From the NCBI GenBank assembly GCA_010909165.1, contig MU008180.1, positions 743,884 through 807,883 of the forward strand: DNA of 64,000 bases, in the 5' to 3' direction. This DNA comes from Anthoceros angustus (Eukaryota > Plantae > Anthocerotophyta). Made by a program: the position numbers and the translations under genes. A model generated the notes under the pieces. It searched no databases. It worked only from the letters and a program-made list of their open reading frames with translations, and was not told where the DNA came from. The number at the start of each line of letters is the position of its first letter. The stretch's first letter is position 1. This document shows, one piece after another, positions 33,901 through 57,243 of this stretch.

Positions 33901-34904
33901 AAACAAATATGAAACGGGTGTTACCCAGAAACTCAAGTCCTGTGGCAGGTGTGGTAAAGGATATCAACGTGAAGATGGAATTCGGAGCGGCGCGAAGCCA
34001 AGTTTGTGAGAGGAGTATCTCGTTACAGTTTGCAGAGCCTTTTCGAACTATCACCCGAGTCGTGAGGAAAGGCAATGACAGAGCATTCATTGTACAGGTG
34101 ACCTTGGTATCTCAAGTAGTAGCCACGACTACGGTGGTTTCTGCAGAGTTGAAATTGCAGCCAGGCTTTGTCCATGTAGATGCGCTTGTGCCAAATTGTC
34201 AGCAGTTGTTGCCCCTCACCTTGACAGCAACTTCCGAGGGTGCTCTACTTTTTGTAGTATCTGCTGGTACGGGTGGGGATAGGGAGGATGTAGGCTCACA
34301 GGAGAGTGTGTTAGAGGTGTGGTATAGAATTTCAGGAAATCGCAGATCTGGGGCTCATGCCCCTCCTGACAGAGCAGGTCAGCAGGGAACAGAGCAAGGT
34401 GATACTGGCCTGCTTTTCACTAGTGCATTCATTTTGAAGATGCCAGTCGTTGAACAACTGTTGGCTGTGGGGCTTTTGCCTACTCCTTTGGTACCCCCGC
34501 AGTTAGGGCAGCCAGTGATACTCCAGTGGAGAGTAGAGAGGTTGAAGGCAGGGTGGGCTACAGTTCTGCAGAGGGAGTCGGAGGGTGGGCTTGACAATGC
34601 CAAGCTAGGGCAGGTGAATGCAGAAGACAATGAGGAGTTGCTGTACGAGATAAAGATGAATGAAGAGAATTGGATGATTGCTGGACGCAAAGAGGGAATC
34701 ATATCATTAGCGCCGGACGTGGGATCCCGAGTGACTGTCTCCATGGTGTGCGTCCCCTTGGCTGCTGGTCATGTCCATCCCCCTTCCCTGCGGCTCCCCC
34801 TCATCAACCGGGCACACATCAACCATAGTCCTGCAGGCCCCCATTTGCTTTGTGTGCTCCCGCCGTCACCCTGTACTGCTCTATGTGTAGCCAAACATCT
34901 ATGA
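30921..34904 (+). CDS. TRS130: TRAPPII-specific subunit TRS130/TRAPPC10 (CLUB), single 1,327-aa exon
   Basis: VAIEDVNDLWP, VEYVLTTDARLR, PYASVVLVSCED, DREWFILFVSKA, FEMAGIYDDALREYSELE, REFDFRQYLFARQ and ELCEGDPG...VWSGFPE match plant TRS130 along the full length of an uninterrupted ORF. Confidence 0.95.
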   Translation: MATSSSSPLSKLPSGKFSWEGIVVAIEDVNDLWPSFKEGFEARVPFKKVHLVNKDHSTILVEKLLVEYVLTTDARLRGRISQSQEQSPFCFQFPYASVVLVSCEDQDEYRSILKPRLKGMLQNDDREWFILFVSKAPPAEAAQRMIRKVFSKLQDDFSSKRRDRCCRFDLNAADATLWDEVEAKMVECIRNTLERRMLYYEDESRKLTESRYSPSWSFSHFLMIKENAASMFEMAGIYDDALREYSELEQCFVELLNADKLKSREFGGLDPGDDRAALLEVNRKPLAQFVQDDSVREFDFRQYLFARQAVVLFRAGRAAEVATRGFVFILSFSRILSRNEKTLSFCLKEVWVITACMALVKGMSERGAPKLFNPDAEKEFYRVRGDLCSHARTKFMRLADLIGYTDIIERSPCNSAALSMLPWPRPLVWPALPPDSLERVLGKQQAASVNVVANGTNKKQLSLAPSVLLREANRRRASLSTGNITELLESRAPLKDRDAAEGGHHVRSSSHSLPTTPTSNDGQLTSPGTANRVIDKPMKLIEIQVAAESALLKLLTDDKLRSAFSSATACEDFYLELTQAAADSFHLSWRARHGVVLDGEIAAVQYRRGNVDAAAKLFEKVCALYAGERWNFLLAQVLPRLSDCQLQLKDLAGHLSSCSKLLSLGQGLVSDEKRKSLQAELVRLAHSGLPNPISLDVSALISFSPRASPPLELCEGDPGVLQVFVWSGFPEGISLESLSLTLITTYSTDEGAKIVQSADTPVLQPGKQVLAFLLPPFRAGSYVLGALTGQIGQVKVRSHTYCTTSAVSSKSGAPDSDDYLIVEKSQRPVLEVTSPRVLVEMSAAVAWGLLLGAPQWVGLVIQPKDYSLKGAILYISAGSGLNLDDLKEAELERLSLPTKPSGDDAEKVVETLAPEVEVVEINGGKIEYPEWASTVACILWLKLVVKQAAENESSSAGVQPPPSPPSPKILSSSALSSRRQSGSAGAGVLDPRAETNMKRVLPRNSSPVAGVVKDINVKMEFGAARSQVCERSISLQFAEPFRTITRVVRKGNDRAFIVQVTLVSQVVATTTVVSAELKLQPGFVHVDALVPNCQQLLPLTLTATSEGALLFVVSAGTGGDREDVGSQESVLEVWYRISGNRRSGAHAPPDRAGQQGTEQGDTGLLFTSAFILKMPVVEQLLAVGLLPTPLVPPQLGQPVILQWRVERLKAGWATVLQRESEGGLDNAKLGQVNAEDNEELLYEIKMNEENWMIAGRKEGIISLAPDVGSRVTVSMVCVPLAAGHVHPPSLRLPLINRAHINHSPAGPHLLCVLPPSPCTALCVAKHL

Positions 34905-36611: not shown

Positions 36612-38614
36612 ATGAAGAATTCCAGAGGAGGGAATACTTTGCAGCTGGATTGGCTGAGCTGGAACAGGGTGTTGTCCCGATGTGATTTGCAGAGCTGCAG
36701 CACCAAGACGCTCATCCTCTCCGCCGCTTCTGTTGTCTTGATTTGCTTCATCTATTTTGATCTAGCGGTTGCGCCCTCCTCGTTGTTGGTGCACCAGGCA
36801 AAGGAGGTAGGCGTGTTGTTCGCTAGAACTCAGTCTGAGGGCTTGGCTCCGCCTGAGGATAAGGTCCCGGTAGTCGACCAGGAAATTGGCACTGTGCCGA
36901 AGCCTCGAGACTGGGAGCATCTCCAAGGCGGGAGTGGCGTAGGCTCAAATGCCTCACTGGAGGCAGGAGCAGGCAGTGAGGAGGAGAGTAATTTAAGAGG
37001 TTTGGAGTCTCCAAACCAAGAAAACACCTTGCAGGCGAGCCTGGTCTCAACTGCAGGTTATGGTGATCCATTTTCCCCGGTGTTGGACGACACGATTTTG
37101 AATGGGGGCAGAGCTGAGGCCGCTCCTCCTCCTCCTCCAGGTACTACTCCTCTTCCTAGCTTGCAGATTGAGAAGCAGGAGGAAAGGAATGGGACTCAGG
37201 ATGAAGCTCAGACGAACAGTGAAGAGCCTCCTAAAGAGAAGTCCAATGCCGGACATTTACCGGATGCGGGCTGCAATATTTATTCTGGAAGGTGGGTTTT
37301 TGACAATGCGTCCTATCCCTTGTACAGACTAGACGACTGCCCTTTCGCAGACGGTGGTTTTCGATGTGGGGATAACGGACGTCCTGACCTTCGGTATGAG
37401 AATTGGCGGTGGCAACCGTTTGGATGCGACATGCCAAGGGTAGATCCAAAGCAGGTGCTGGAAAACCTACGAGGTGGAAGGATGGTGTTTGTCGGGGACT
37501 CGCTGGGGCGCAACCAGTGGGAATCCATGCTGTGCTTGCTGTCCTCCGCAGTGCCCAACAAGAGTAGGATATACGAACTGGATGGGAACCCCATCACCAA
37601 GCACAAGGGGTTTTTGCGATTCCGGTTTGACGACTACGACTGCAATGTGGAGTACTACCGATCCCCATTCCTGGTCCCTCACGGAAGGGCTCCTCCACGT
37701 CCACCGGCAGGAGTGAAGACGACTCTGAAACTAGACTTCCTGGAGTGGACGTCACCCAAGTGGCAAAACGCTGACATTCTCATCTTCAACACCGGGCACT
37801 GGTGGACTCCCTCAAAAACTACCAAGCTGTAAGCAAGCTAGCTATTGCCACGGGCTCTTAAAAGCGTCTTGTCCTATCTGTCGAGATGTTGGGTCCTGTG
37901 CCTGACAGGTCTGCTGCTCTGCCTGTGCCAGAGGGGTCTTCTTCCAGGAGGGGACGGAGGTGAACATGAGCCTGGGCATAGAGGAGGCCTTCACCAGGGC
38001 CATGCGGACATGGTCAAAATGGGCACGGACCAAGGTTGATCTGAACAAGACGAGCGTATTCTTCCGCGGCTTCGCTTCTACTCACTTCAGGTACCCTAAT
38101 CCAAGTCACCCTCAACGTCAATCTTTGCCCCTGATCCACATCCAGATCCAGATCCAGATCCAGATCCAGATCCAGATCCAGATTCAGATCCAGAGCAGAG
38201 CATAACGCACCCACCTCCTTGCTTTCTTCCTTCCACAGAGGGGGCACCTGGAAGGACGGTGGGACTTGCCACAAGGAGGTGCTGCCGTTCCCGGACGACG
38301 CCCCAGGGCTGAATGGGACTCCAGTGACCAACACTATTATTCAGAAGGAGCTGGCCCACTCTGACCTAAAGCAGGTGACGTTCCTGGACGTCACCCTGTC
38401 CACCAATTACCGCAGAGACGCACATCCTGCAATGTGGAACACCGTGCCACCCAAGCCCATCAACCAGCAGGACTGCAGCCACTGGTGCCTCCCCGGGGTT
38501 CCTGATTCCTGGAACGAGATGGTATTCGCCGAATTGGAGATGAGGCGTTGGTCTCATGAGCGGCCACGCGCGGCGGATCCAGAAGCCGCACAAGATCCAA
38601 CAACCTCCAGATAG
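36612..38614 (+). CDS. TBL: Trichome birefringence-like (TBL) polysaccharide O-acetyltransferase; three coding exons (~36612-37828, ~37931-38090, ~38239-38614)
   Basis: It has an N-terminal TM segment, the CNIYSGRWVFD PMR5N domain, the GDS motif (FVGDSLGRNQWESM), NTGHWW and the DxxH motif (DCSHWCLPGVPDSWN). Subfamily was not assigned and a longer N-terminus cannot be excluded. Confidence 0.93.
38131..38195. repeat. (CAGATC)n intronic microsatellite
   Basis: About 10 copies in the second TBL intron. Confidence 0.9.
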
Positions 38615-38627
38615 CCTGGTGCAGAGG

Positions 38628-39005
38628 AAAGGCAAGGCAAGGCAAGGCAAGGGAAGGGAAGGCAAGGAAAGGAAAGGAAAGGAAAGGAAAGGCAAGGGAA
38701 GGGAAGGCAAGGAAAGGAAAGGAAAGGCAAGGCAAGGCAAGGCAAGGCAAGGCAAGGCAAGGCAAGGCAAGGCAAGGGAAGAGAAGGGAAGGCAACGCAA
38801 CGCAACGCAACGCAACGCAACGCAACGCAACGCAACGCAACGCAACGCAACGCAACGCAACGCAACGCAACGCACGCAACGCAACGCAACGCAACACGCA
38901 ACGCAACACGCAACGCAACGCAACGCAACGCAACGCAACGCAACGCAACGCAACGCAACGCAACGCAACGCAACGCAACGCAACGCAAGGAAAGGAAAGG
39001 AAAGG
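38628..39005. repeat. Compound pentanucleotide microsatellite (AAGGC/AAGGG/AAAGG)n-(AACGC)n-(AAAGG)n
   Basis: Directly visible; it starts about 14 bp after the TBL stop codon. Confidence 0.95.
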
Positions 39006-39963
39006 ATAGCCTACCGTAAACGGAATCCTCCTGTATCTGGGCCCCGCCCGCTCCCTATATAATTTTGAAAAGTTTGGCACTGGCTTCCCTAGGCCCGTAA
39101 TGCGACATCCTCGTAGCCAATGGGTTTTGGAAGCTGCCTATTTCACGCCTGCCTGGTGCATACATATGTACCTAGTCTAATGTGTCACATACTGTATGTA
39201 TGGAAATGTTGCCGTTCACGTTTAGGTACTAATCTTCATTCCTAACGTGGGGCGTGAAATGAATGTGAATGTAATCCGATCGTCCTCGGTTGTAGCATGG
39301 AGGAGGGATGACGGAGAGACGGCCAATGTGAAAAGGAGAAAGTGGGGTCAACCCAACTGCCGCCCGCCCTTTCTCTCTCTGCCCCCTTGCACAAGTTGCC
39401 AATGCGCACAAGCATCCATTCCCTCTCGAGCGGCATTTCTCCAACCACCCGCCTGCTCGCCCGAGGCCTCGCATGGGATAGCGGCTTCCGGACAACATTC
39501 CCTTGCAACAGCGCCGCCGTGCTCCCTTCCGCGCGGCTCTCCTTCTGCCGGATCTCCTTGCCTCCGCTTCCCCTGCAATCTGATCCGTCCGCAGCTGCGT
39601 CTGGCGCTGGCGGCGGCAGCAGCACCGGCAGCGGAAGCGGAAGCGGAGCATGTCGAGCGCTCTCTCGGCTTGAAGCGGAAGGGGAAGCAGGCAGCTGCCG
39701 GATAGGCTTAAGGTAAGGACGCTGGCCTCCGGCGGCTAATCTCGGTTTGGTGCATGGCAGATCAGGATGCTCCTTTGTTGCACTCCAGGTGGTGTTTGCG
39801 TCGGGGTTGCCCGGGGAGGATGGATTCTCTCATGCTGTAGAAGGACTTTGGCAACGGTGTAACGGTGGACGGTTCTATGTTGTGCAGGAAAGTAAGGCGC
39901 TCCGGCGTGTGCGCTTTGTAGGAGGTGCACACCGTCTCTGCCTTGGCTAGTGTCAGGCGCGCA

Positions 39964-42682
39964 ATGTCGGTGGCAGGGCCGGAGGGGCTGACATCCTCAT
40001 ACCTGCAGAACAATGAATTCCGGGCGAGTGCGCTTCACCACAGCATTGAGCAATCGGTGCTGCAGTCCTGTGGCGTGCAGGTGCTCCAAGTTGGACCCTC
40101 TCTCGGAGGTTTAGGTTCATGCTGTGCTGGACGTGGCCGCCTTTGCGTGTTCGGCTAGGCTTGATGCGGGAGTGATTGCGCTTTCCGTACTGCGCATTGT
40201 GGATTTGAATGACTTGCAGCTCGTGCCGTGTGCGCCTGTTCAGCTGATGGTAGACTCATGGAGTTTTTCTAGGATGGATAGTTGTGTGACGGTAATGGTT
40301 ATGCCAGCGTGTGCTGACTTGTTTCCCTTTCTGAGTTTAGGAGGAGCTTCTGGCCCCCCTCCTCATTGCCAGTGATTCGGCCCACGATGGTGAGAGTGAG
40401 GTTGAAGATGACAACGCTGAGAGATTAGACGTAGGTCTGAAGATGTATGGGTGAGTTGGCCAATCTTCACAGTGTCCCTCATTTACAGGGTGGTGTAAGA
40501 TGCCTGCCGTTGGTGTTCTGTTTCCTGCGTCAGGTTGGTTGAAAGCAATGGTACCCGTTTTTGCAAGTAAGCGTTGCTGAATCTGCGCATTTTGCTACAC
40601 TCTTCGTATTGTCAGGTGTGTGCACTATCGACGTCGATGTCGCATCAGAGCTCCTTGTTGCAATGAAGTTTTTGACTGTCGGCATTGTCATAACGATGTG
40701 AAGGTGAAAGAGGTTTCTACTTAACGGATTTCCTTCAGGCTTAAAAGTCTTGATGGTAGCTTAACTGGGGATTCATTTTTGTAGAATGCGTATGAAGTTG
40801 ATCCATGGAAGAAGCATGACATGCCTCGGCACGACGTGGAGAAGGTATGGAAATGAGCGGAAGACAGCATTACATGCTGAACGCACCGCAGTGCCTTCCG
40901 GAAGCTCTGTATTCGTTTGACTTTCTGCGGGAAACCTTTCCCGAAAAAGCAGTAATCGTTGGTTGTTTTCAGGTGATTTGTTCACTTTGCAACACTGAGC
41001 AAAAGGTATGTTTTTTGTTTCTGTCTCGTTGCCACGGCATGAGTACCTTGGAGTTCAACCTTCACGAATGACGTATTGTCGTAATCGGGAACAGGTGCAA
41101 CAGATTTGTGAGAATTGTGGAGTCTGCATGGGGAAATATTTCTGCAAGATGTGCAAGTTCTTCGACGATGATGTTAGTATTCCATGTGTGTGAGATCAAT
41201 TCATCAACATGCCAAATAATCAGTGGCGTGCTTCGATGCAGAACGTTCACCTATGAGTTTTCGACTGTCAAAGTGTTCCAAATAGTGCTTTAAAGTGGAT
41301 CTTTGTTTCTGAAATCATGTTTCAGGTGTCTAAGGAGCAGTTCCACTGTGACTCTTGTGGCATTTGCAGGTAATCTGGATTCACATCTCTCACTTTTAGA
41401 TCAACCGGTAACCTACTGCAAGTTTTGTTGCGTTCTCTCCCTAAGGGTGAAGTGATTGTTGACTGAGTCAGCTGTGGGTATATTCTGCGAAATGGGATTT
41501 GCAGAGTGGGAGGCAGCCAGAACTTCTTCCATTGTCAACGTTGCGGTAAGCCTTTCCTCTGTTCTCGAGCTCATCCGCTTCGGATTCTTGTTTGGATTTT
41601 TTGCTAGTAAACGGTTCTTCTCTCAGTACTTGTGTAGCACCCATGTGGGAGCATGGCTCCAACGTAGGTGCTGCCAGATTGCAGGCACGGGCAGCATGCA
41701 AGTGATGTCTTGAATAGGAAGAGCAGAAGCATTTGCTTTTAGCTTGCTCATGCTGTCATACTCTTAACCTGATGCAAGCTGATCCCGTAGTCTTGGTGTT
41801 TTGACCTTCGTGTTCCTAGCTGTTCTTAGCGTGTCGCTGTACTTCGTTAGAGATTGCGTGCTACAATCTGAATGTTTTCATTCGCGGACCGAGCAGGTTG
41901 TTGCTACTCGAGAAAGCTGGAAACGGGTCATCCCTGTGTTGAAAATGCGATGCATCACAACTGTCCCGTTTGCTTTGAGGTTCGCTTTGTGCTGCCCAAT
42001 CCTATTGCAAGTCAGCGGTCTTGGGGGCCGTAAAACCTGGCTGTTGAGACTCTGGGCATTGACTGTGGTGCAGTATCTTTTTGACTCCCTGAAGTCTATC
42101 ACTGTCATGCGATGTGGTCACACAATGCACGAGGCTTGCATGAGAGAAATGCACCTGCACCGCCAGTAAGTAGAAATCTGATCTCGTTCTGCTGTTAGCT
42201 TCTCTTCATGCCCCGGGCGTTTGCTTAGTTGTGGATGGCTTCAGGTATTCGTGTCCCATCTGCTCCAGGTCGACTCTGGAGGACATGTCTACATTTTGGG
42301 AAGAACGTGATCGCGAAGTAAGGCGCATATCCTCTTGTAGCCAGTCTATGCTGAAAAACTGCGAATCCGACTTGACTTAACTAACGCTCGTTTGTCCTCC
42401 AGGTGGCCGCGACTCCTATGCCCGTTAGTTACCAGAACAAGGAGGTAAGTGATGGCGTGAAGTGTATTTTTCCTGGTACGCCTTTGGTTGTCAACAACGC
42501 CTCTTCCGGTGAATCAATAACTTGTCTTCGGATCTGTTGCTTAGGTCCGTATTCTCTGCAACGATTGTGGTGCGAAAAAAGACGTTATCTTCCATATCGT
42601 TGGTCTCAAATGCCCGGCTTGCTCGTCTTACAACACCCGCCAGTTGAAGGGCAGGTCAGGCTCCTCGTCACACCACCTGTAG
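39964..42682 (+). CDS. CHY zinc finger / CTCHY / RING-H2 / zinc-ribbon E3 ubiquitin ligase (Pirh2, MIEL1, RZFP34 family), about 13 exons
   Basis: Spliced exons read YG|[104 protein letters not shown] and ILCNDCGA...[17 protein letters not shown]. Start codon is tentative. Confidence 0.93.
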
Positions 42683-43099
42683 GCAGCAGTTGATGACGTG
42701 TCCGAACCCTTACAGCTGAACGATTTTTAGCGTCCTTTAACGACTCTGTACCATTTGTTGCAATGGGGAAGGTGTTGAAGCCATCTTAGGTGTCTTGGTG
42801 GGTAGTTAAAATTAGGGGTGAAGGGATTCTAGGTGATGGTAGGAGACAATCTAAGGTTGGTCGGTGGTTGTCGGCTCAGCAACCTCGAGCAACCTTGATA
42901 TGTTCTAATCGTACTTGGAGGATATTCTTTCTAATTATTTTTAATTTTATTTATCATATGATAAAATTACATGGTTTTTTGAGTTCAGCATATAGCTTGG
43001 TGTAAATAGCAATGGTTAGCTTTTATATTTATTTTAAAAGTTTTATTGTAATATTATTGATCTTATTTTTATACATATGTTATATTTTTCATATTTAGT

Positions 43100-43561: not shown

Positions 43562-44760
43562 ATGAAGTTGCATGAGGTCTATCTCCTCTTCTTCTTTTTG
43601 TATGGAATTCGAGTGCTGTTATGGTGTAGCACACATGTTTAGTATACCTCACTGAAGTGTTGAGCAACGTAGTCCCATAGAAGTTGTTTCCACTTTTTTA
43701 AGTTGTTTGGCCTTCCTGTAGGAGGTAAAATCATGCTTCCTTTTAGTTATAATACTAATCACTATGTATTATGAATCTATGTTTAGTTATGCTGTAAGTG
43801 ATATTAGATACTCCTTCGAGGAGCCGAACACGTTTTACATATGCATACGATTTTACACTTTGCAACATGTAGATACAGACAATCCTAATATTGATGGAGG
43901 TGACTATTCACCAGCATATGATAATTTAATTCCAGTGGATGATGAAGGAGAATATGATTTGATGGAGGTAACTATTCACTAGCATATGATAATTTAATTC
44001 CAGTGGATGATGAAGGAGAATATGATTTAATTCAAGTGGATGATAAAGATGAATTATGAGTTAATTCCAGAGGATGAGGAGGAGGATATGAGTTAATTCT
44101 AGAGGATGAGGAGGAGGATATGAGTTAATTCCAAATGATGAGGAGGAGGATATGAGTTGATTCCAGTGGATGACGATGCAGAATATGATTTAAATCTAGT
44201 GCATGATGAATGAGAATATGACTTAATTCTAGTATGATATAACTTAAAGTCTAGTGGATGATGAAGAAGAATATAATTTGATTCCATTGGATGATAAAAA
44301 AAGGATGTAAGATAATTTGGGATGATGAAGCAATGATTTTATTCCAAGGGATGTTGCTAGAGGATATAAGTTAATTGCAGTGGATGATGAAGCAATGATT
44401 TTAGTCCAGTGGATGCTGCAAGAGAATATAAGTTAATTCCAATGGATGATGAAGAAGGATATGATTATTCATAGGTGATTCTAGGATATGAGGTAATTCC
44501 AATGGATGATGAAGGAGGTTATGATTGATCATTCATGATTGTTTTCTTATTCACTTGATGTCCCCATAGCAAGTGAGTATTCATTAACAAAAATAATTCA
44601 TTGAAGAATGATGATGGAGAAGACTATCAAAGAAGTGATGAGGATTCACTAGCAAATGATAAATCACTTGTGGATGACAAAAGAAATTATAATGGAGAAA
44701 GTGAAGAAAATAACGCGTGTCAATCTTTGCTCAAACAAATTCATACCTACCAAAGTCACA
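43562..44760 (+). pseudogene. Degenerate acidic Tyr-rich repeat protein gene, paralogue of 46238-47347
   Basis: A signal-peptide-like start (MKLHEVYLLFFFLYG) and a possible donor at 43725 are followed by DGGDYSPAYDNLIPVDDEGEYD and an array of similar units broken by stops and frameshifts. Confidence 0.5.
43888..44525. repeat. ~30-33-bp degenerate minisatellite (TTAATTCCAGTGGATGATGAAGGAGAATATGA), roughly 18-20 units
   Basis: Visible tandem units; the consensus translates as LIPVDDEGEYD. Confidence 0.88.
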
Positions 44761-46107: not shown

Positions 46108-46237
46108 CTCTCCTCATTGTTCATTTCAAACACAACAACAACAATTTTGTGCGCTCTTTCCCTTTCCTAAGGGTCTCATATAATTCAAGAGCTTTTTTTG
46201 TGTTGAGGGCATCTTTTTGTTCATAATATCTTTCAGA

Positions 46238-47347
46238 ATGAAAAAAGAATTTCATGTGGTGTTTTTGCCCCTCTTAGTTGTAATGTTGTTCACTATATCA
46301 ACTTTTGAAGCTAAAGGTGTACACTGTGCTCGGCTCATCAAAGGAGTAATTTCTATCACGACATCCCTAACAACAAGGCATAGTGCTCTTCAGGGAACTC
46401 AAAGTCCGCTACTTTCACAAGTGGGTCCATTTTCACCCGAGGTACCCCGAGGAGCAAAAGCTAGAAGGATACGACATCACATCATAAACCCATTGTGGGA
46501 AGAATGGAAAGTGCCAAAGCCTCATTCACCTCCTCATGTCCCCACAGCAGTCCCAGGGATAGATGTCAGAAACCATGATGAAGATGTGGGCAACCCTAAT
46601 GATGAATATTCACAAGAAGGTGATGGAGGAAGAGGTGGTGATACGGGCAATCCTAATGATGAATATTCACCAATTGTAGATTATGGTTCACAAGCACCAC
46701 AGGAAGGTGATGGAGGGAGAGGTGGTGATGTGAGCAACCTTGATGACGGCTATTCACCAATTGTGGATTATGGTTCACAAGCACCACAAGAAGGTGATGG
46801 AGAAAGAGGTGGTGATATGGGCAACCTTAATGATGGCTATTCACCATTAGTAGATTATGGTTCACAAGCACCACAAGAAGGTGATGGAGAAAGAGGTGGT
46901 GATATGGGCAACCTTAATGATGGCTATTCACCATTAGTAAATTATGGTTCACAAGCACCACAAGAAGGTGATGGAGAACAAGGTGGTGATATGGGCAACC
47001 TTAATGATGGTTATTCACCATTAGTAGATTATGGTTCACAAGCACCACAAGAAGGTGATGGAGAAAGAGGTGGTGATATGGGCAACCTTAATGGCGACTT
47101 TTCACCAATAGTTGATTATTGTTTACAACCACCACAAGAAGATGATGGAGGAAGAGGTGTTGATGTGAGCAACCTTTATGATGACTTTTCACCAGTAGTT
47201 GATTATGGGTCACAAGCACCACAAGAAGGTGATGGAGCAAGAGGTTGTGATGTGGGCAACCTTAATGATGATTATTCACCAATAGTAGATATAATGGTTC
47301 ACAAGCACCACAAGAAGGTGATGGAGCAATTCTACGTGTACATGTGA
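46238..47347 (+). CDS. Putative secreted acidic Tyr-rich protein with 8 tandem 29-aa repeats
   Basis: A signal-peptide-like start (MKKEFHVVFLPLLVVMLFTISTFEA) and a basic/Pro-rich linker precede repeats of EGDGERGGDMGNLNDGYSPLVDYGSQAPQ. The frame is open for 369 aa in an AT-rich context. Confidence 0.65.
   Translation: MKKEFHVVFLPLLVVMLFTISTFEAKGVHCARLIKGVISITTSLTTRHSALQGTQSPLLSQVGPFSPEVPRGAKARRIRHHIINPLWEEWKVPKPHSPPHVPTAVPGIDVRNHDEDVGNPNDEYSQEGDGGRGGDTGNPNDEYSPIVDYGSQAPQEGDGGRGGDVSNLDDGYSPIVDYGSQAPQEGDGERGGDMGNLNDGYSPLVDYGSQAPQEGDGERGGDMGNLNDGYSPLVNYGSQAPQEGDGEQGGDMGNLNDGYSPLVDYGSQAPQEGDGERGGDMGNLNGDFSPIVDYCLQPPQEDDGGRGVDVSNLYDDFSPVVDYGSQAPQEGDGARGCDVGNLNDDYSPIVDIMVHKHHKKVMEQFYVYM
46580..47330. 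repeat. 87-bp coding minisatellite, 8 full units plus partial flanking units
   Basis: Units are visible in both DNA and translation. Confidence 0.93.
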
Positions 47348-48570
47348 GCAACCTGCATAATGGCTACTATTCACTGATATCTGATAATTCACCAGTGGAT
47401 GATGACAGGGAATAGGATATCCTTTTTCACAAGTGGATCGTTTTTCACTTGAGATCCCTACAACAGGCGACTCTTCACTAACAAATGATAATTATGCCGT
47501 TGATATTGATGACTTGAGATGACATAATCAAGATTGGTACAAGAATCAAAAGACCCAGAGACTTATTCACTAGATGAAATCAAAAGGTCTAGAGACTGCA
47601 AACGCAACGCAAGAAAAATACACTTGGAAAAAATATCCTCTATTGTAAAATATTAACGCTATGTTATAAAATATCTAAATTCACTTAAAAATAGTACATA
47701 AACGGCTAAAATCCTTTGTAAAACAAGTCATAACCAAAAAGCCATATGTCTTTAGTTGCGATTGTTTGTAAAATGACCCCTCCCTTCATTAGGTATGGTC
47801 CACAAGGAGGATAAAATCGTTTGTGTTGAAACATGATAATTTTTGAAGGGGGGGATTATAGTAACCCCTTTCGATCGAAACAGCACCCCCTTGTCACATT
47901 TTACACCCTTCCTGCGATAGCATATCTGCCATGCTTTGATAATGGGCACACCCTTTCTGAGTCCATACCTTTGATAAAAGACGCACTTTCAATTCTACAC
48001 CCCAGAACTAGAGCACTGTAGGGCGCGGGCCCGTTTGCATTTTTGTAGAATGCACAGTGGGCTGCCGTTTGCATTTGTTTATTACAACTGAAAACATTTA
48101 CTTTTCAAATGGTAGAACACAATAAAAATCATGCCTGTACTTGCGACAGTCTCATTTCAGTATTCGTGAAAACCTTGCAACAAACAACTGCTAAAGGAGG
48201 AAGTGGTCATCAGCATTAACAATAGTCATTCAAGAGGGCGGTCTAGCGACTCGTCCATGCCTTGCACCGATACTGAGTCAAGGACCACGGCCAAATTCCG
48301 AAGGTGGTCCATATCCTCCGCATCAAAGCTGACCGACGCCCATGGGCAGGGTGCGCTAGGAGAGGGTGCCAGCCGGCCAGCGCCCATGGCGGGCGTCTTT
48401 GGGGAGGGCTTCGGCCGGGCGCATGCGCAGGCGTCGGGGAGGGCGCTGGCGTAGCGTCGGGGAGGGCGCCAACCGCCAGAGCCCATGGGCGGGCGTCTTG
48501 GGAGGCGCCGTCCGGCCGCGCCCATGGGCGGGCGTCTTGGGAGAGGGCGCCACGGCCGGTGCCCTCCCTG

Positions 48571-48660
48571 TTTCACCGCATGAGTCGGCGGGTGGTGCTA
48601 AGGGAGGCCGGCCCGGCCGGTGCCCTCCCTTAGCACCACCCTACGGTGCATGCGGGTAAA
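48571..48660. repeat. Inverted repeat / hairpin after a cluster of GC-rich short direct repeats (48340-48570)
   Basis: GGTGGTGCTAAGGGAGG (48591-48607) is the exact reverse complement of CCTCCCTTAGCACCACC (48624-48640). An imperfect outer stem TTTCACCGCATG/CATGCGGGTAAA flanks it. Confidence 0.85.
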
Positions 48661-49000
48661 GTCCACACAACTTTGTGTAACACTCTCATTACAAATTTGT
48701 GTATCACTCTCTACAAAGAACACGATCATTCAGGTATGCTGAAAGATGGACTATCAAAAAAAAATAGTTGAAAACCCTTCGACATGACAATGGACCTGGT
48801 GAATTTACGTCCAAGAAATTTTAGGGCTATAAAAAATTTGCAGATGAAGGAATTGGTGTACTAGAATCTTCACACCATAGCATGAATGTTCCTTAAGAAT
48901 AAGATTGTGTACTCCTGAATCTGAAAACTGAATCTGAAAACTGCACTTGGGCATCAGTGAGAGATACCCAGAGTGCTCCCGCCCGATGGTCGTGGGGATG

Positions 49001-52000
49001 TGTGGACTACGGACTTCCCTTGGGGGTTAAGAAATAAGTAGGTTTTTGTTTTTTTGTAGGAGCGGAGGATAAAATAAGGCGGAAAAGGGAGGAATAAGCA
49101 CGGATAGCACTCGGTGCACTCGGAGTATACCCTGACGGAGTGGCAACGACCGACCTACTATGGCGGCGCCGGACTACGTCGGGGAGTAGCAGGATAAGTC
49201 CGGACTCACCTGTGTCCAAGGTGATAAGCACGGAAAGTAACTTAGAAGTGAGCCGTGAGGACTGACTCAGGCGGCGCCACGTGGACGGCCCCGAGTGGAG
49301 GTCGGCATGCACCGCCAGACCGGGCCGCGAGGCAGTATTCACGCCCGCGGCGCAGCGGCGTAAAACCGATCTGTGGCGTAAGGCGAGTAAGCGGGCGTAA
49401 GGTCGAAATAAGCCATGCAGACCTCGCGATTCTGGCGAGGAAGGCGCCTTCCGCCCAGTTACTCCGGCGGCGAAGGAAGGTCATTTCATTGTACCGAGAC
49501 ACTCAGCCTCTGCGCCCGCAACCCGGGCGCGCTTATCTCTTTGAGCGCCCGCACCTTCGAGCGTAGTTCACGCCGGGGTTGGAGAAGCGAACGGCGAGGA
49601 GGGCGATCGTGCCGCTGAACTCCGGGCCACAAGCTCAAGGGAGACGAAGGCGGCACCCAAAAAGCTCATGGAAGTTTGGGAGCCATGGAACCTCGTGGAG
49701 CGCAACATTGTGACCCGCGCTATCCGGACTTTGGGCCCCGGGCCGGAGGAAGCGGAGAATTAGTGGAGGAGTGGCACTGGATGCGTTCCAGACGGTCCGA
49801 CGCTCGACAACGCTACTCGTCCGGAGTTCGCCCAAGATGTTGGCGGCGGTCAACAAGGAGGTGCGGTCCAAGAACCTCCGGAGGACCCAAGGCGATGGAC
49901 CTTGAGGTCCCGAGGGCGCCTACAACCGCCCAAAGGAGGAAGAAGGGGAGTGGTGCCGAGCCCCTCAAGGCGGGGAAGATAGGGCCGCAACAGCGATGCC
50001 GAGGCTCGACGCAGGACCACCAACGGATGGTTGATATCCGACCGGATCCGAGTAAGGGCGGTAGCCCGATCATTGTCCATTGAACTCGCCACCAAGGTGG
50101 ATCACCTTGGTGATAACTGCTGGTATTCCGCATGCGCCGGGGAAGAGGGCGGATCGGGAAGGATTATCTTCGCCGGTTTAGTCGAGGCCCGCAAGCTCGT
50201 GACCGAGAAGCCTCGCCATGGGCATCCCCATACCGATCCATGTATGGGGACATTTCGAGCCTCAAGGAGGGAGAGCTTGAGCGGCGCCCGGAAAGGACTG
50301 AGGCCCGCAAGTGGAGCGGCAAGGGCGCCCGAGGTGGAGGCCGACCAAGGCCAAACGGACCGGAGGAGGACGACTGAGGGAATTCCTGACTCCATACGTC
50401 TGAACGGACCCCTCACCACCTGTGGAAGTATGGGAGAAATCCCTTCCCTCCTCACAGTGCCCAGTAGGGCGGCCGATCCGGCGAGGCGGCCGCCAATAGC
50501 CCCGCCACCACCACAACCACACCAGGAGCCCCGACTGTGAGGGAACCAAGAGACGCAAGATGGTTTACCAACGCCACCTCGACGGTGCCAAGACTTACCC
50601 CGCCTACCTGAGTGGCAAGAAGCGGAGGAAGTGTAAGGAGGCGAAGGGACGCCGCCTGTGAGCAGGAGGACACCGCGCAGCCTGCACTCCGGGTCCTGCC
50701 GGCTGTGAAGGGCAAAAGGGCTTGCTCCGGACCCCTCACCTCCTCCGAGCCCTGTGAGAAAAAGGGCGAGAAGGAGCTCGCGCCAAAAGGGCCAAGGAGG
50801 GTGAAGCTCCGAGTCAAGACTCGTGACCTAAGGGTCCCGATTAGGTCCGAGAACCCACCGACTCCCTGACAATGGTATGGAGGTCCTTGGCGGACCGTGA
50901 AATGCCGCCCCACTACGGACTTTGTGGGAGCCTCACGTGTGGAAGAAACACGGCGGGTCACAGCTACCGTCATGGACGGTATGCTTTGGGGTCTCTGGGA
51001 TGGCCGAGAAGACCTGTGGAGGTAGAAGCCACCCGAGGCGCATGGTACTCCTCCAGTGAGCAGCTTGAGGGGCCCAGGAGGCAGAAGGAAGGCCAAGCCT
51101 CGGCCGATTGAGGAAGGGAAACGCCGGAGGCCGAGAGGGAAGTCCGTCCATCCGCAAGGACCGGACTAAATTCCTTCACCGGAGGAGGAGGCGGTAAGGA
51201 GGCCAAGCGGGCCGAGGACCTCGCAGTGAGGGGTAGCGCAGCAGAGGCGAAGAGGCCGGGCGCAAGCGGGCGGGCTCGGGACTGGCGGAGGCGGCCCGCT
51301 CAATAGCCCCGCCACGGCCACAACCACGGAGCCCCGGACCGGAGGCGAAGAGGCAAAGGCGGCGTCTGCCTCGGGCGGTGCAGTACTTACACCTTGCAGG
51401 TGTGAAGCGGAGGCGGTAAGGAGGCGAGAAAGGGGCCGAGGCGAGGAGGACAGCGGCCGCGGGCCACATCGCCGCAGGAAGGGCAAAAGGCTTGCTCCGG
51501 ACCCCTCACCTCAGGCCCAGGAGAAAAAGGCGGAGAAGGAGCTCGCCAAAAGGGCCAAGGAGGGTGAAGCTCGGGGCTCGGCCTCTAAGGGTCTGATTAG
51601 GTCCGAGAACCAGTCATTACTCGGACGGTATGGAGGTCCTGGCGGACGTGAAAACTCACTCGGACTTTGTGGGAGCCTCGGCCGTGGAAGAAACACGGCG
51701 GGTCACAGCTACCGTCATGGGCGGTATGCTTTAGGTCTCTGGGATGGCGAAGACCCGGAGGTAGAAGCCACCGGGCGCATGGTACTCCTCCGGGAGGCGG
51801 TTGGAGGGCCGGAGGCGAAGGAAGAAGCTCTCGGCGGATTGAGGAAGGAAGCCGGGAGGCGAGGAGGAATCTGGTCCATCCATGAGGACGGACTAAATTC
51901 CTTCAGTGGAGGAGGCGGTGAGGCAGGCGGAGGCGGTGAGGACCTCTGTGCGGAGGGTAGTGGCGGAGGCGGCGGCGAGGCGGGCGGGCTCGGGACTGGC

Positions 52001-55000
52001 GGAGGCGGCAGGCTAGACGAGCCTGGAGGCTCGGTGAAGGTGGCCAGGAGGCGGAAGCCACGGCAGCCGCGATCACTATCGCGTGATCGAACCGTGGAGG
52101 GAGGCTTGAGCGCTCGGGAAAGGGCTGGAGGCCTACTTGAAGTGGAGGCGGGCAAGGCGCAGGGGTGGGGGAGGCCGAGGCCAAGCGGACCGGGAGGAGG
52201 CGGGAGGATTCCGGACTCCATCGTGCAGAGCGGACCCCTCACCACCCGAAGTATGGGAAGCTTCCCTCCTCACAGTGCCCAGCGGCGGCGGCGAGGCGGG
52301 CCCAATAGCCACCGCCACAACCACAGCGGGCCCGCGGACGAGGAGGCGGAGGCGAAGGCAGGCGGCGTCTGGCACCTCGGGCGGTGCAGTACCCCCACCA
52401 GGGTAACAAGCGGAGGCGGTAAGGAGGCGAAGGCCGCCGAGGCGGGAGGACAGCGGCAGCCGCACCCGGCAGTCTGTCGCCCGGCGGAAGGGCAAAAGGC
52501 TTGCTCCGGACCCCTCACCTCCGAGCCCAGGAGAAAAAGGGCGGAGAAGGAGCTCGCGGCCAAAAGGGCCAAGGAGGGTGAAGCTCGGAGCTCAGCACTC
52601 AGGACCTAAGGGTCCTGATTAGGTCCGGAGAACCCAGTCCGGACTTACTCGGACAGCGGTATGGAGGTCCTTGGCGGACCGTGAAATGCCGGCTCCCGCT
52701 ACGGACTTTGTGGGAGCCTCACCAGCGGCGGCCGTGGAAGAAACACGGGTCCTAGCTACCGTCATGGACGGTATGCTTTAGGTCTCTGGGATGGCGAAGA
52801 CCCGGAGGTAGAAGCCACCGGGCGCATGGTACTCCTCCGGGAGGCGGTTGGAGGGCCGGAGGCGAAGGAAGCTCTCGGCGGATTGAGAAGGAAGCGGAGG
52901 CGAGGAGGAAATCTGGTCCATCCAGGGGCCGGACTAAATTCCTTCAGTGGAGGCGGTGAGGCAGGCTAAGGAGGCCGAGGCGGAGGACCTCTGCGAGGCG
53001 AGGGGGAGGCCCGAGGCGGAAGAGGCCGGGCGCAAGCGGGCGGGCTGGAGGCGGCAGACTAGAGCCAAGGCGGAGGCTCGGTGAAGGTGGCCAAGGCGGA
53101 AGCCACAGCGCGATCACTATCGGCGTGATCGGGCCGGTGGAGGAGGCGGGGAGTAGCCAGCCAATCGAAGGCGGCGGTGGCGGGAGCAAGCAGACGAGCC
53201 GTGCGAAACTGGAGGCCAAGACCCGGAAATCGGGACCTCGGCGCACTGCAGGAGGTAGAAGGGGAGGCGGCCGGGTAGCCACGGCCAATCAAGGCCGGTG
53301 CGGCAATGAGCAAGCACGACGAGCCGTGTAAACACGAGGCCAAGACCCGGAAATCGGGGACCCTGTGGCGCAGGGCAGGAGGTAGAAGGGAGGCGTGGAG
53401 CCGGGAGGACAAGAAGGACACCTTGGAGTTACAACCCAAGACGCTGGAGAGAAGCAAGGGGTTCTCAACGAGAATCCAAGACTTCGAGGAGATAGAGCGC
53501 CCACCGCCTCAAGATGGAGCAGGAGGTGGCGGAGCAAGCGCGACCACCAGCCTGTGAAGTTCGCGACAAGGAGATGGAGGATCTCCTGACTCACCCGTGA
53601 GGTGGAGCAAGCGTGGAGATGGAAGACCGCAAGGAGACTTTGAGTCGCAGCCCAAACTACCATTGAGAGGAATGGTAGTCTCAGGACATGGTCGCGAACG
53701 CGAACGGAAATAGAGCGCCCCTGCTGGCGATGGAGCAGGGAGGCGGCGGAGATGGAGCAGGAGGCGGGGAGGCCGAGAGGAGATGGAGAAGGGCACAGGC
53801 GAAGCCCGCAGCCGCAGAGTTGCCCGACCGAGGAGATGGCGGAGTTAAGCCCGAATGGAAAGAGAGGCGAGAGCACCGGAAGGCATAAGAAGCCGCGGTC
53901 CAGAGGAAGGGGAAGGGGAACGCCGCGCTATGGCCGGTCGGCGAGCAAGAAGGAGTTGGAGGTGGAGCAACAAATGAGCCATGGAGGTGACCGAGGCACT
54001 GCACTGCAGAAGCAGCCCGGCCCGCCTATCAAACTCGGGAGGTGGTCCAACAAGCGGCAAAGACGCCTCCCGAGCACCTATGGCGAAGGGAGTATCGGTG
54101 CCCGCACACGTGGAAGAGGCAATCCAACAAGTGGATTCGGACTTTGCCTATTACCACGCCCGAGCCCCGGCTGAGGCCTCTCACGAAATACGGACCGGAA
54201 GGCCTGAGGGGAAGAAGGGCATGGGACAAAGACAGGGACTCTAGGGGCCCTGCTTGGAGACGACGGCAATGGGGAGAAGAGCCTCAAGAGGAGCGAGACG
54301 CAACGGACCCTGTGGTAAGTTCACCGCAACCCGCCTGGAGAAGGGAGGTGACGGCCAAAAGGGGCGCAGGAGGAGCCAACCCACCCAAGACAAGGGCCTG
54401 GGTAGGGAGGAGGACCTAGCAAGACGAGGTCCATGATAAGGGGTCCGGAGCTTGGGGCCGGACCCGGTAATAAGTTCGGACCACGAGGTCCGAACCTCAG
54501 ACGAGGCCGGACCCGGCCGGACTCGAAATAAGCCGACCGGAGTTCAGACCGGAGTCGAGACCGACCTCGAGGTCCGGACTTGCAAGAAGGAGGAGCCCCT
54601 TCGACTTACGCTAGGGGAGCAGATAGCGGTGGCCCCACCGAGGGGACCCACGGGAGGCTGTGGAGGATGACGTGGTAACGGCCGCCGATCGCCGCCGCAG
54701 AGCCAACCCGGCTGTGATTCCGGAGAGGAGGGGTCTACCGCGATCACTATCGCGTGATCGAACCGGTGGAGGGAGGCGGCCGGGTAGCCACGGCCAATCA
54801 AGGCCGAGCAGCAAGAGAGCAAGCACGAGCCGTGCGTAAACACTGAGGCCAGACCCGGAAATCGGGACCCTGTGGCGCAGCAGGAGGTAGAAGGGAGGCG
54901 GAGAGGACAAGAAGGACACCTTGGAGTTACAACCCAAGACGCTGCTGAGCAGCAAGGGGTTCTCAGAGAATCCAAGACTTCGAGGAGATAGAGCGCCCAG

Positions 55001-56938
55001 CCTCCTCAAGATGGAGCAGAGGTGGCGAGCAAGCGCGACCACCAGCCTGTGAAGTTCGCGACAAGGAGATGGAGGATCTCCTGACTCACCGGAGGTGGAG
55101 CAGCAGGAGATGGAAGACCGCAAGGAGACTTGAGTAGCCTTCAAACTACCATTGAGAGGAATGGTAGTCTCAGGATATGGTCGCGAACGCGAACGGAAAT
55201 AGAGCGGCCAGCCTGGCGGACGGAGGCGGCGGAGATGGAGCAGGAGGTGACGCCGCCGATGGAGAAGGGCCCGGGCGAAGCCCGCACCGCAGAGTTGCCC
55301 GACCGTCGAGAGGAGATGGAGCAACAATGGACAGAGGCGAGAGCACCGGAAGGCATAAGAAGCCCGGGTCCAGCTTGAGGAAGGAAGGGGAACGCTATGG
55401 CCGGGCAAGCCGCAGCCGGAGGGACTCGGGAGGCGGGGAGGTGGAGCAGGAGGCGGTGGAGCAACAATGGAGGTGACCGAGGCCTGTACCTGAAGCAGCC
55501 CAGCCTATCAAACCCGGCGGGGAGGTGGTCCAAGCCGGCAAAGACGCTCCCGAGCACCTATGGCGGCGGGGAGTATCGGTGCCCGCACACGTGGAAGAGG
55601 CAATCCAAGTGGATTCGGACTTTGCCTATTACCACGCCTGGAGAGAGGCCTCACCACCGAGAAATAGACGGACCGGAAGGCCTGAGGGGAAGAAGGGCAT
55701 GGGACAAAGACAGGGACCCCTGCTTGGAGACGACGGCAATGGGGAGAAGAGCCTCAAGAGGAGCGAGACGCAACGGACCCTGTGGTAAGTTCACCGCAAC
55801 CCGCCTGGAGAAGGGAGGACGGGCCGAAAGGGGCGCAGGAGCCAACCCACCCAAGACAAGGGTCGGGGTAGGGAGGAGGACCCAGCAAGACGAGGTCCAT
55901 GATAAGGGGTCCGGAGCTTGGGGACCGGACTGAATAAGTTCGACCGAGGTCCGAACCTCAGACGAGGCCGGACCACGACCGTGAAATAAGCCGACCGGAG
56001 TTCAGACCGGAGTCGACCGACCTCGAGGTCCGACTTGCAAGAAGGAGGAGCCCCTTCGACTTAGGGGAGCAGATAGGTGGCCCCACCGGAGGGGACCCAC
56101 GGGAGGCTGTGGAGGATGACGGTAACGGCGCCGACCGCCGAGCCAACCCGGCTGTGATTCCGGAGAGGAGGGTCCGCCTCGCGGATCATCCGATTGGGTG
56201 CGCCGCAATCGCCGTGACGGAGATTGGACCACCAATCCCAAGGCGGAACCGGGACCTTCCAGCGAAGGAGATAGGGGAAATAGGATGGTAGGCGGCCGAT
56301 TAGGTATACCGAAATGCCATCACCGTAATAGGGGTGTAATAAAGACGCCGACGTAGTATAAGAGGGTCCGCCTCAATAAATCATCTTTTCTTGGTGTTGA
56401 TGCGTTCTTGCAGACCTTTGTGTGTCTTCTTGCTAACGTGAGTCCCGAGTCACCGAAAGGTGCACGATACCCGGAGATTGATCGTGGTCCCGTGACGGAC
56501 CTAACGTGTTGTGGTGTGTGCAGGAGGTGACTGGGACCCGTGCTCGTCGAGCCGCGCCCACCGGACCGGAACGTGGAGCCGGAGGGACTCGGGAGGCGTC
56601 TGAGCCGGACGGAGAGGCCCGAGAACGACGGAGGAGGTCGGGGCATGTAACCAGCGTCTTTCCTAAGGCGATAAGTGTAGTGTGAGTGGAGAGAGGAACG
56701 GACGAGAGGTGTGAGTGGAGAGGAGCGAGACGCAACGGTCCTTAAACGTTTGGCCATACCGGCCTGCGGTGATTGTTGCAGTAGTTAGGCGTGGGCGGTG
56801 AATGTGTGCGTTGGAACTAAAGTAAGACGAGAATCGCTCGAACGCCGCAACGGAGTCATTCCCTTGGGAACGGACTCCTTCCTACAACGACATGGGATTG
56901 TGCGCGCCCGGCTGGCCGTCAGCGAAAGTCGCGCCACA
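49001..56938. mobile_element. 7.9-kb GC-rich insertion with TGTGG...CCACA termini and a 5-bp TSD (GGATG); solo-LTR-like or non-autonomous LTR-derived element
   Basis: GGATG at 48996-49000 and 56939-56943 flanks inverted TGTGG/CCACA ends, and the composition shift coincides roughly with these ends. No gag CCHC, protease, RT or integrase motif was seen. Confidence 0.75.
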
Positions 56939-57243
56939 GGATGACACTGATGTGATCCCCCGATTTCTCACTTTGATCTCATAGATCTTGGCACCCTGGC
57001 TCTTGGCTATTGAGGAGATTGCGAGCCCTTGCATGTGGGGCAAATATCAACATGCGTAGAATTAATACAACATGATGTTCCATTGCCATATGTGTACGAC
57101 CTACAACAACCTCCCAGCGGCAGATGCACTAAATCAGGTTGACGATATTCTTCTTGTCAACGGCGAGCTCCGGATTATTATCGTGCTCTTGATTTTTGTG
57201 CTACATCCTCCAAAGGTGCTAGCTACAACCTCTCTTAACCCCA

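Follow-up and report, generated by a model that had tools for sequence, protein, structure and literature searches.

Tyrosine-sulfated signalling peptides and tandem-unit peptide precursors are among the closest described systems for the locus considered here. The known minimal requirement of plant TPST is an Asp before the Tyr in an acidic context (PMC6698702), and the enzyme is conserved across land plants, in a statement that does not name hornworts (PMC8462819); this is the source from which the PSY1 and RGF1 sequences used below for comparison also come. RGF precursors are 79–182 amino acids (AA) long, and known precursors are short proteins with one C-terminal peptide domain (PMC8708909). 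The multi-CEP and multi-CLE precursors consist of a signal peptide and, behind it, a unit repeated several times in tandem; these proteins are Pro-rich, and a core of 12–15 residues with defined end residues is better conserved than the spacers. To our knowledge, no multi-copy TPST substrate has been described in plants so far. In this work we analysed a stretch of 64,000 nucleotides of the hornwort Anthoceros angustus (assembly GCA_010909165.1, contig MU008180.1, positions 743,884 to 807,883; hereafter the window), in which an original prediction had placed, at positions 46238–47415, a secreted precursor with eight acidic Tyr-bearing repeats that might release sulfated peptides. Rather than a hormone precursor, the locus appears to hold a lineage-specific gene that is young or in decay. 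The chances are about even that it is a protein-coding gene restricted to this lineage, which is still alive with a shortened C-terminus or has suffered damage to its 3′ end only recently.

The candidate open reading frame (ORF) lies on the + strand, within a 40% GC island at about 42.9–48 kb of the window. As assembled, its frame runs from the ATG at 46238 to a TGA at 47345–47347 and gives 369 residues. The start originally proposed is therefore retained, whereas the end is displaced: 47415 marks where the old frame terminates and is reached solely by reading through a frameshift. The N-terminus carries two Lys, then about 15 hydrophobic residues and, near residue 27, an A-K-G that satisfies the −3/−1 rule; hydropathy reaches a maximum of 3.2 over residues 5–18 (11-residue windows), and residues 3–25 form a helix in an AlphaFold2 single-sequence model. 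All three properties fit the signal peptide that had been proposed, and on these heuristics the N-terminus is a plausible signal peptide. The linker announced by the original prediction is likewise there, as a unique stretch of 90 residues (AA 26–115, isoelectric point (pI) 10.5) between the signal-like start and the repeats. It contains Arg-Arg-Ile-Arg at 46463–46474 and an FSxExP-type motif at 46403–46453, the latter recurring 3′ of the array, in a third frame, at about 47425–47448 (87.5% over 24 nt). A TATA-like hexamer is present upstream as claimed, but such hexamers are common in 40% GC DNA and this one is uninformative.

The repeats were detected by TRF at 46611–47326 with a period of 87 bp, 8.2 copies, 89% matches and a score of 1085. 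The period and the approximate copy number agree with the eight 29-AA units first described, but read in frame the array opens with a short unit that lacks 10 residues, continues with seven full units of 29 residues and closes with a damaged, frameshifted ninth and a degenerate tail. Of the six frames of the consensus unit only one is open. When the window was searched with a 34-nt core of this unit, six matches were obtained, all within the array, against none expected in shuffles, so that within this stretch the unit is confined to the array. The acidic Tyr environment was correctly described: of the seven full units, six have Val-Asp-Tyr-Gly and one has V-N-Y-G, and the other Tyr of the unit (DEY/DGY/DDY-SP) is present except in two units, where it is replaced by Phe. 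After DYG the unit continues S-Q-A-P-Q-E-G-D-G and onward, and it comprises one Ser-Pro, one Ala-Pro and a sole basic residue, an Arg within G-E-R-G-G. The repeat region (AA 116–351) has a pI of 4.05, a net charge of −44 and 21% Gly. It is predicted to be intrinsically disordered: in the AlphaFold2 single-sequence model, which is of low confidence (mean pLDDT 44), only N-terminal helices are formed, with faint three-residue strands at each Val-Asp-Tyr. The coordinates of the different segments are given in Table 1.

Table 1. Segments of the candidate locus and of the related upstream sequence, in window positions.
Feature	Positions	Strand	Basis
ATG and N-terminus resembling a signal peptide (residues 1 to about 27)	46238..46318	+	Hydropathy, Lys-Lys n-region, A-K-G, modelled helix
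Unique basic linker	46319..46558	+	pI about 10.5, charge +6
Intact part of the 87-bp / 29-AA array (short first unit and seven full units)	46559..47254	+	TRF, translation; no indels or stops
Ninth unit with frameshift, 3 bp more, 18-residue out-of-frame tail and stop 47345–47347	47255..47347	+	
Old frame continued past the shift, open to TAG 47413–47415	47289..47415	+	Frame starting 47257
3′ flank with homology to that of the relic; third frame open to TGA 47519–47521	47416..47521	+	
TATA-like hexamer	46179..46184	+	54–59 nt 5′ of the ATG; weak evidence, read from the sequence
Decayed paralogous relic with acidic Tyr-bearing 33-bp and 68-bp units	43860..44700	+	Translation, blastn, TRF, alignment

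Several properties of the frame argue for coding. The 115 unique codons that precede the repeats are open, which has a probability of 2.4e-4 per frame at the local stop frequency of 0.070. The short first unit and the seven full units contain no stop and no out-of-frame indel despite about 11% divergence between units. Only about 5% of the single substitutions in the unit create a stop, and the stop-free array is weak evidence when taken alone (roughly P = 0.18 for 31 variants); the lack of indels adds more weight, on the basis of general indel-to-substitution ratios. In addition, the period is a multiple of three, and the GC content of the repeats differs by codon position (0.69/0.43/0.16, GC1 > GC2 > GC3). 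These properties, together with the well-formed signal-like start, are difficult to reconcile with a sequence that was never a gene, that is, a non-coding minisatellite or transposon-borne unit open by chance and joined to an upstream ATG. The unit is found nowhere else in the window, and the vicinity shows neither transposon protein domains nor convincing terminal repeats, which also speaks against such an origin. The points in its favour are that a neighbouring relic, described below, holds a related minisatellite with a 32-bp period, that variable columns are equally distributed among codon positions (9/9/8), and that the locus lies within an AT-rich intergenic island. On balance we consider that this array is most improbably a sequence that never coded.

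Other observations weigh against a functional gene. A check for purifying selection among the units turned out unfavourably: the ratio of non-synonymous to synonymous variation among units (pN/pS, summed pairwise) is 0.68, which is near neutral, and the distinct variants comprise 11 synonymous and 20 non-synonymous changes, which is no significant departure from the 22% synonymous predicted under neutrality (p = 0.08). The equal variability of the three codon positions points in the same direction. The GC content at third positions (GC3), 0.16 in the repeats and 0.33 in the N-terminus, is that of the surrounding AT-rich non-coding DNA and is unlike that of the neighbouring TRAPPC10 and TBL genes (0.51–0.59). 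The last unit is frameshifted, and the relic shows that sequences of this type also amplify as non-coding minisatellites of 32-bp period. Finally, an exact product look-up did not find the candidate protein on record, and no fragment of it was found in a collection of 15 billion proteins that includes transcript assemblies and whose coverage of this species is not known, nor did one turn up among shorter proteins.

The relic sits about 2.7 kb upstream of the candidate ORF. Its units, of the form Tyr-Glu/Asp-Leu-Ile-Pro-x-Asp-Asp-Glu-Glu-Gly, are scattered across all three frames and broken by stops, and TRF detects periods of 68, 33 and 32 bp. The 32-bp array, at 43994–44233, has 7.3 copies with 81% matches and derives from a formerly coding 33-bp acidic repeat. 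Since a 32-bp period cannot be coding, this part of the relic was amplified as plain minisatellite DNA, and the array is a coding repeat that went on amplifying after loss of frame. The relation with the candidate is seen at the 3′ ends, where the last unit, stop and 3′ flank of the candidate (47366–47493) match the relic at 77–79% over 56 nt and 69% over 118 nt; blastn aligns the flank region with relic positions 44485–44598, at 69% over 118 nt. In this alignment the candidate TAG at 47413 faces a TAT (Tyr) codon of the relic. The locus is thus a small local birth-and-death cluster, in which the candidate is the sole copy with a long open frame. In its alignable parts the relic diverges by 22–31% from the candidate, and it is full of stops and frameshifts. 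An intact candidate frame next to a shattered paralogue of that divergence implies that the frame was preserved while the sister copy decayed.

This preservation does not extend to the end of the array. Relative to the consensus, the ninth unit is longer by a net 2 bp at about 47290 and by 3 further bp beyond, and after the frameshift 18 unrelated residues are read before the assembled stop. Past the shift, the old frame has about 42 codons without a stop and still resembles a degenerate unit. An out-of-frame stretch of this length would be open with a probability of about 0.05, given the local stop frequency, which suggests that the frameshift is either recent or an error. Rescue by an intron was considered and rejected, as the excess amounts to 2 bp and a GT...AG interval of plausible size that would span it is lacking. 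An assembly error is made less likely by a local assembly that is not noisy (TRAPPC10, over 1327 codons, and TBL read through cleanly), yet tandem repeats are hard to polish.

In the main competing explanation the ORF is a dead gene: a pseudogene of a former secreted repeat-protein gene, unexpressed and unselected, whose frame survives through recent amplification or homogenisation of the array. Such a history would account for the near-neutral variation among units, the GC3 typical of the non-coding surroundings and the lack of a match in protein collections. It would also agree with the frameshift, with a stop at a position where the paralogue has a Tyr, with an additional frame change in the homologous 3′ tail and with the decayed sister copy adjoining. 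The dead gene nevertheless has to explain about 351 codons, 115 of them unique, that have no stop or frameshift while the sister copy is shattered. Moreover, the lesions all lie within the degenerate last unit, array edges usually being the most diverged, and the old frame is open beyond the shift. We therefore regard a dead gene as a possibility to be taken seriously but rather doubtful.

The hypothesis that the ORF encodes a polyprotein, sulfated on Tyr by TPST and cut into about eight signalling peptides that begin with DYG, receives less support. It can invoke the signal-like N-terminus, one Tyr in acidic context per full unit, preceded by Asp in six of the seven as TPST requires (PMC6698702), and the conservation of TPST across land plants (PMC8462819). 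It can also invoke Arg-Arg-Ile-Arg in the linker, which resembles a site-1-protease (S1P) site. Among the nearest language-model neighbours is a cluster of the multi-domain CEP9 type, at a weak score of 0.75, and all neighbours returned by the ESM Atlas lie at 0.75–0.77, below the useful level. The translation of the unit shows neither the body nor the C-terminus of PSY, RGF or CIF peptides (for example DYxxPxxNxxHxP in PSY or a terminal His-Asn in RGF), and there is no dibasic, RRxL-type or other recurring cleavage site at the unit borders. Variable columns are not significantly fewer in the putative core (10/42) than in the spacer (16/45; Fisher p = 0.25), and the pN/pS given above counts against it too. 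Known precursors are short and have one C-terminal domain (PMC8708909), no homologue was found in the collections searched, and the 3′ end is frameshifted. Taken together, the missing cleavage sites and peptide body, a core that is not better conserved, the near-neutral units and the damaged end lead us to judge the multi-copy precursor of the original prediction improbable.

Comparison with individual families leads to the same picture. With the PSY, RGF/GLV/CLEL, CIF, PSK and TWS1 precursors the candidate shares a predicted secretion signal and acidic Asp-Tyr, and with GLV1 a possible S1P-type basic site upstream. The likeness to PSY1 and the CIFs holds for the DYG itself and fails for the rest of the peptide. 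Sulfated-peptide precursors are 70–180 AA long with one C-terminal domain, whereas the candidate has 369 residues and about eight repeats, and its unit has no Pro/Asn/His-rich body, terminal His-Asn or inter-unit cleavage site. The multi-CEP and multi-CLE precursors resemble it in having several tandem units behind a signal peptide, here a predicted one, but the candidate core and spacers vary alike, and its composition is acidic and rich in Gly, Asp and Tyr instead of Pro. Extensins and Tyr-containing glycine-rich proteins have in common with the candidate that they are secreted (predicted for the candidate), repetitive and disordered, with regularly placed Tyr and some Ser-Pro or Ala-Pro. 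However, a search of the translation for Ser-Pro(3–5), Tyr-x-Tyr and Val-Tyr-Lys motifs, which would be those of extensins, gave none, and the protein is strongly acidic, not basic. Its Gly content is far lower than that of classical glycine-rich proteins.

The claim that the protein belongs to no recognised family stands, as no accepted relative was obtained from Pfam, the word index or HMMER. The ORF has no Pfam match, and a word-index protein search returned no relative for either the whole protein or the 115-residue N-terminus. HMMER against 1.84 billion cluster representatives gave a single match (E = 1.7e-4), to CAH1188405.1, an uncharacterised protein of 3218 AA with a PAM2 motif from the flea beetle Phyllotreta striolata. 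In particular, neither the word-index search nor HMMER produced a plant match, and no homology with the plant sulfated-peptide precursors was detected by these searches or by Pfam. Two metagenome scans, one with a DNA pattern and one with a protein query, found nothing. The beetle protein has acidic units of 25–29 residues with the spacing Tyr-x-Pro-[Val/Ile]-x-Asp-Tyr-x4-Pro-x-Glu...Asp-Leu/Met, as in the candidate, but its animal origin and its PAM2 motif set it apart, and the match does not extend beyond the repeats. We rejected kinship in favour of convergence or chance, the score being inflated by repeat-on-repeat matching. Within the beetle protein, residues about 1450–2200 consist of dozens of 25–26-residue units of the form Tyr-x-Pro-Val-Cys-Asp-Tyr-Ser-x-x-Leu-Pro-x-Glu.

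The lack of relatives says little by itself, because the nearest proteomes are only 51–53% identical even for TRAPPC10. The best database match of this neighbouring gene product is from Marchantia, at 53% identity; liverworts, mosses and a clubmoss all lie at about the same distance (51–53% with other liverworts, Sphagnum and Diphasiastrum), angiosperms being at about 47%. A fast-evolving repeat protein would escape recognition at this distance, and the collection holds no close relative among its long proteins. The candidate is a real, gene-like feature. It belongs to no described family, but lineage-specific, secreted proteins built of tandem repeats are a well-known type, to which it would belong; its viability is uncertain.

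For a lineage-restricted gene of this kind, we infer that the product would be secreted, cleaved, modified and functional outside the cell in the following way. The repeat region would have arisen by minisatellite-type amplification of one in-frame 87-bp unit. A cleavable signal peptide would direct the protein to the secretory pathway and be cut near residue 25–27. The basic pro-region of 90 residues may then be cut at Arg-Arg-Ile-Arg, which resembles site-1-protease/subtilase sites; the S1P/SBT6.1 sites of GLV1 and RALF23 are similar to this linker sequence. There would remain a chain of about 236 disordered residues, made of strongly acidic repeats rich in Gly, Asp and Tyr and carrying a net charge of about −44. 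This chain may reside in an extracellular matrix, such as the wall or mucilage, and would there be a ligand for cations or basic partners. A role as an extracellular polyanion associated with matrix, wall or mucilage thus appears the most likely one, and an acidic wall or mucilage protein, which the original prediction had mentioned, is compatible with the data. The Tyr of V-D/N-Y-G could be either sulfated or cross-linked by peroxidase, the two being equally possible; sulfation is conceivable because Asp-Tyr is what TPST requires and because TPST is conserved across land plants.

A further step, in which the gene is alive and encodes a new polyprotein of the hornwort lineage, sulfated at the VDY of each unit and either releasing multiple acidic sulfopeptides or acting as a heavily sulfated extracellular polyanion, seems to us very improbable. 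If true, it would be the first multi-copy TPST substrate in plants. The locus would matter more only with sulfation or peptide release shown, and nothing here supports either. For now it ranks as an ordinary candidate for an orphan or young gene, whose viability is uncertain, and it is not evidence for a new signalling system. If alive, it would add another lineage-specific secreted repeat protein to the hornwort genome. It also illustrates clearly how minisatellite amplification builds the body of a gene, next to which a sister copy is decaying.

The 3′ exons of a CHY/RING-type zinc-finger gene lie at 41800–42690 (+), with introns of about 60–90 bp; this gene ends near 42680, about 3.5 kb upstream of the candidate. 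On the other side, at 48000–57000, is a block of 62–65% GC with a strong positive AT skew of 0.25–0.41, a GC skew, and direct repeats of 1.0–1.5 kb that are 86–98% alike; two ORFs scanned in this block had no Pfam match. A transposon as the source of the locus was also considered and rejected, as neighbouring ORFs contain no transposon domains and neither an Rfam family nor convincing terminal repeats were found.

TRAPPC10/TRS130 (CLUB-type) occupies 30921–34904 (+) as one uninterrupted ORF of 1327 codons. An intronless copy of this large housekeeping gene is unusual for a land plant, and its product was not on record in an exact look-up. In the TBL (PMR5N/PC-esterase) gene the reading frame continues cleanly across two ordinary introns. 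A (CCAGAT)n microsatellite at 38130–38195 is in or adjoins the second of these introns, and the gene is closely followed, at 38580–39027, by an array that has a 10-bp period and about 22 copies or more.

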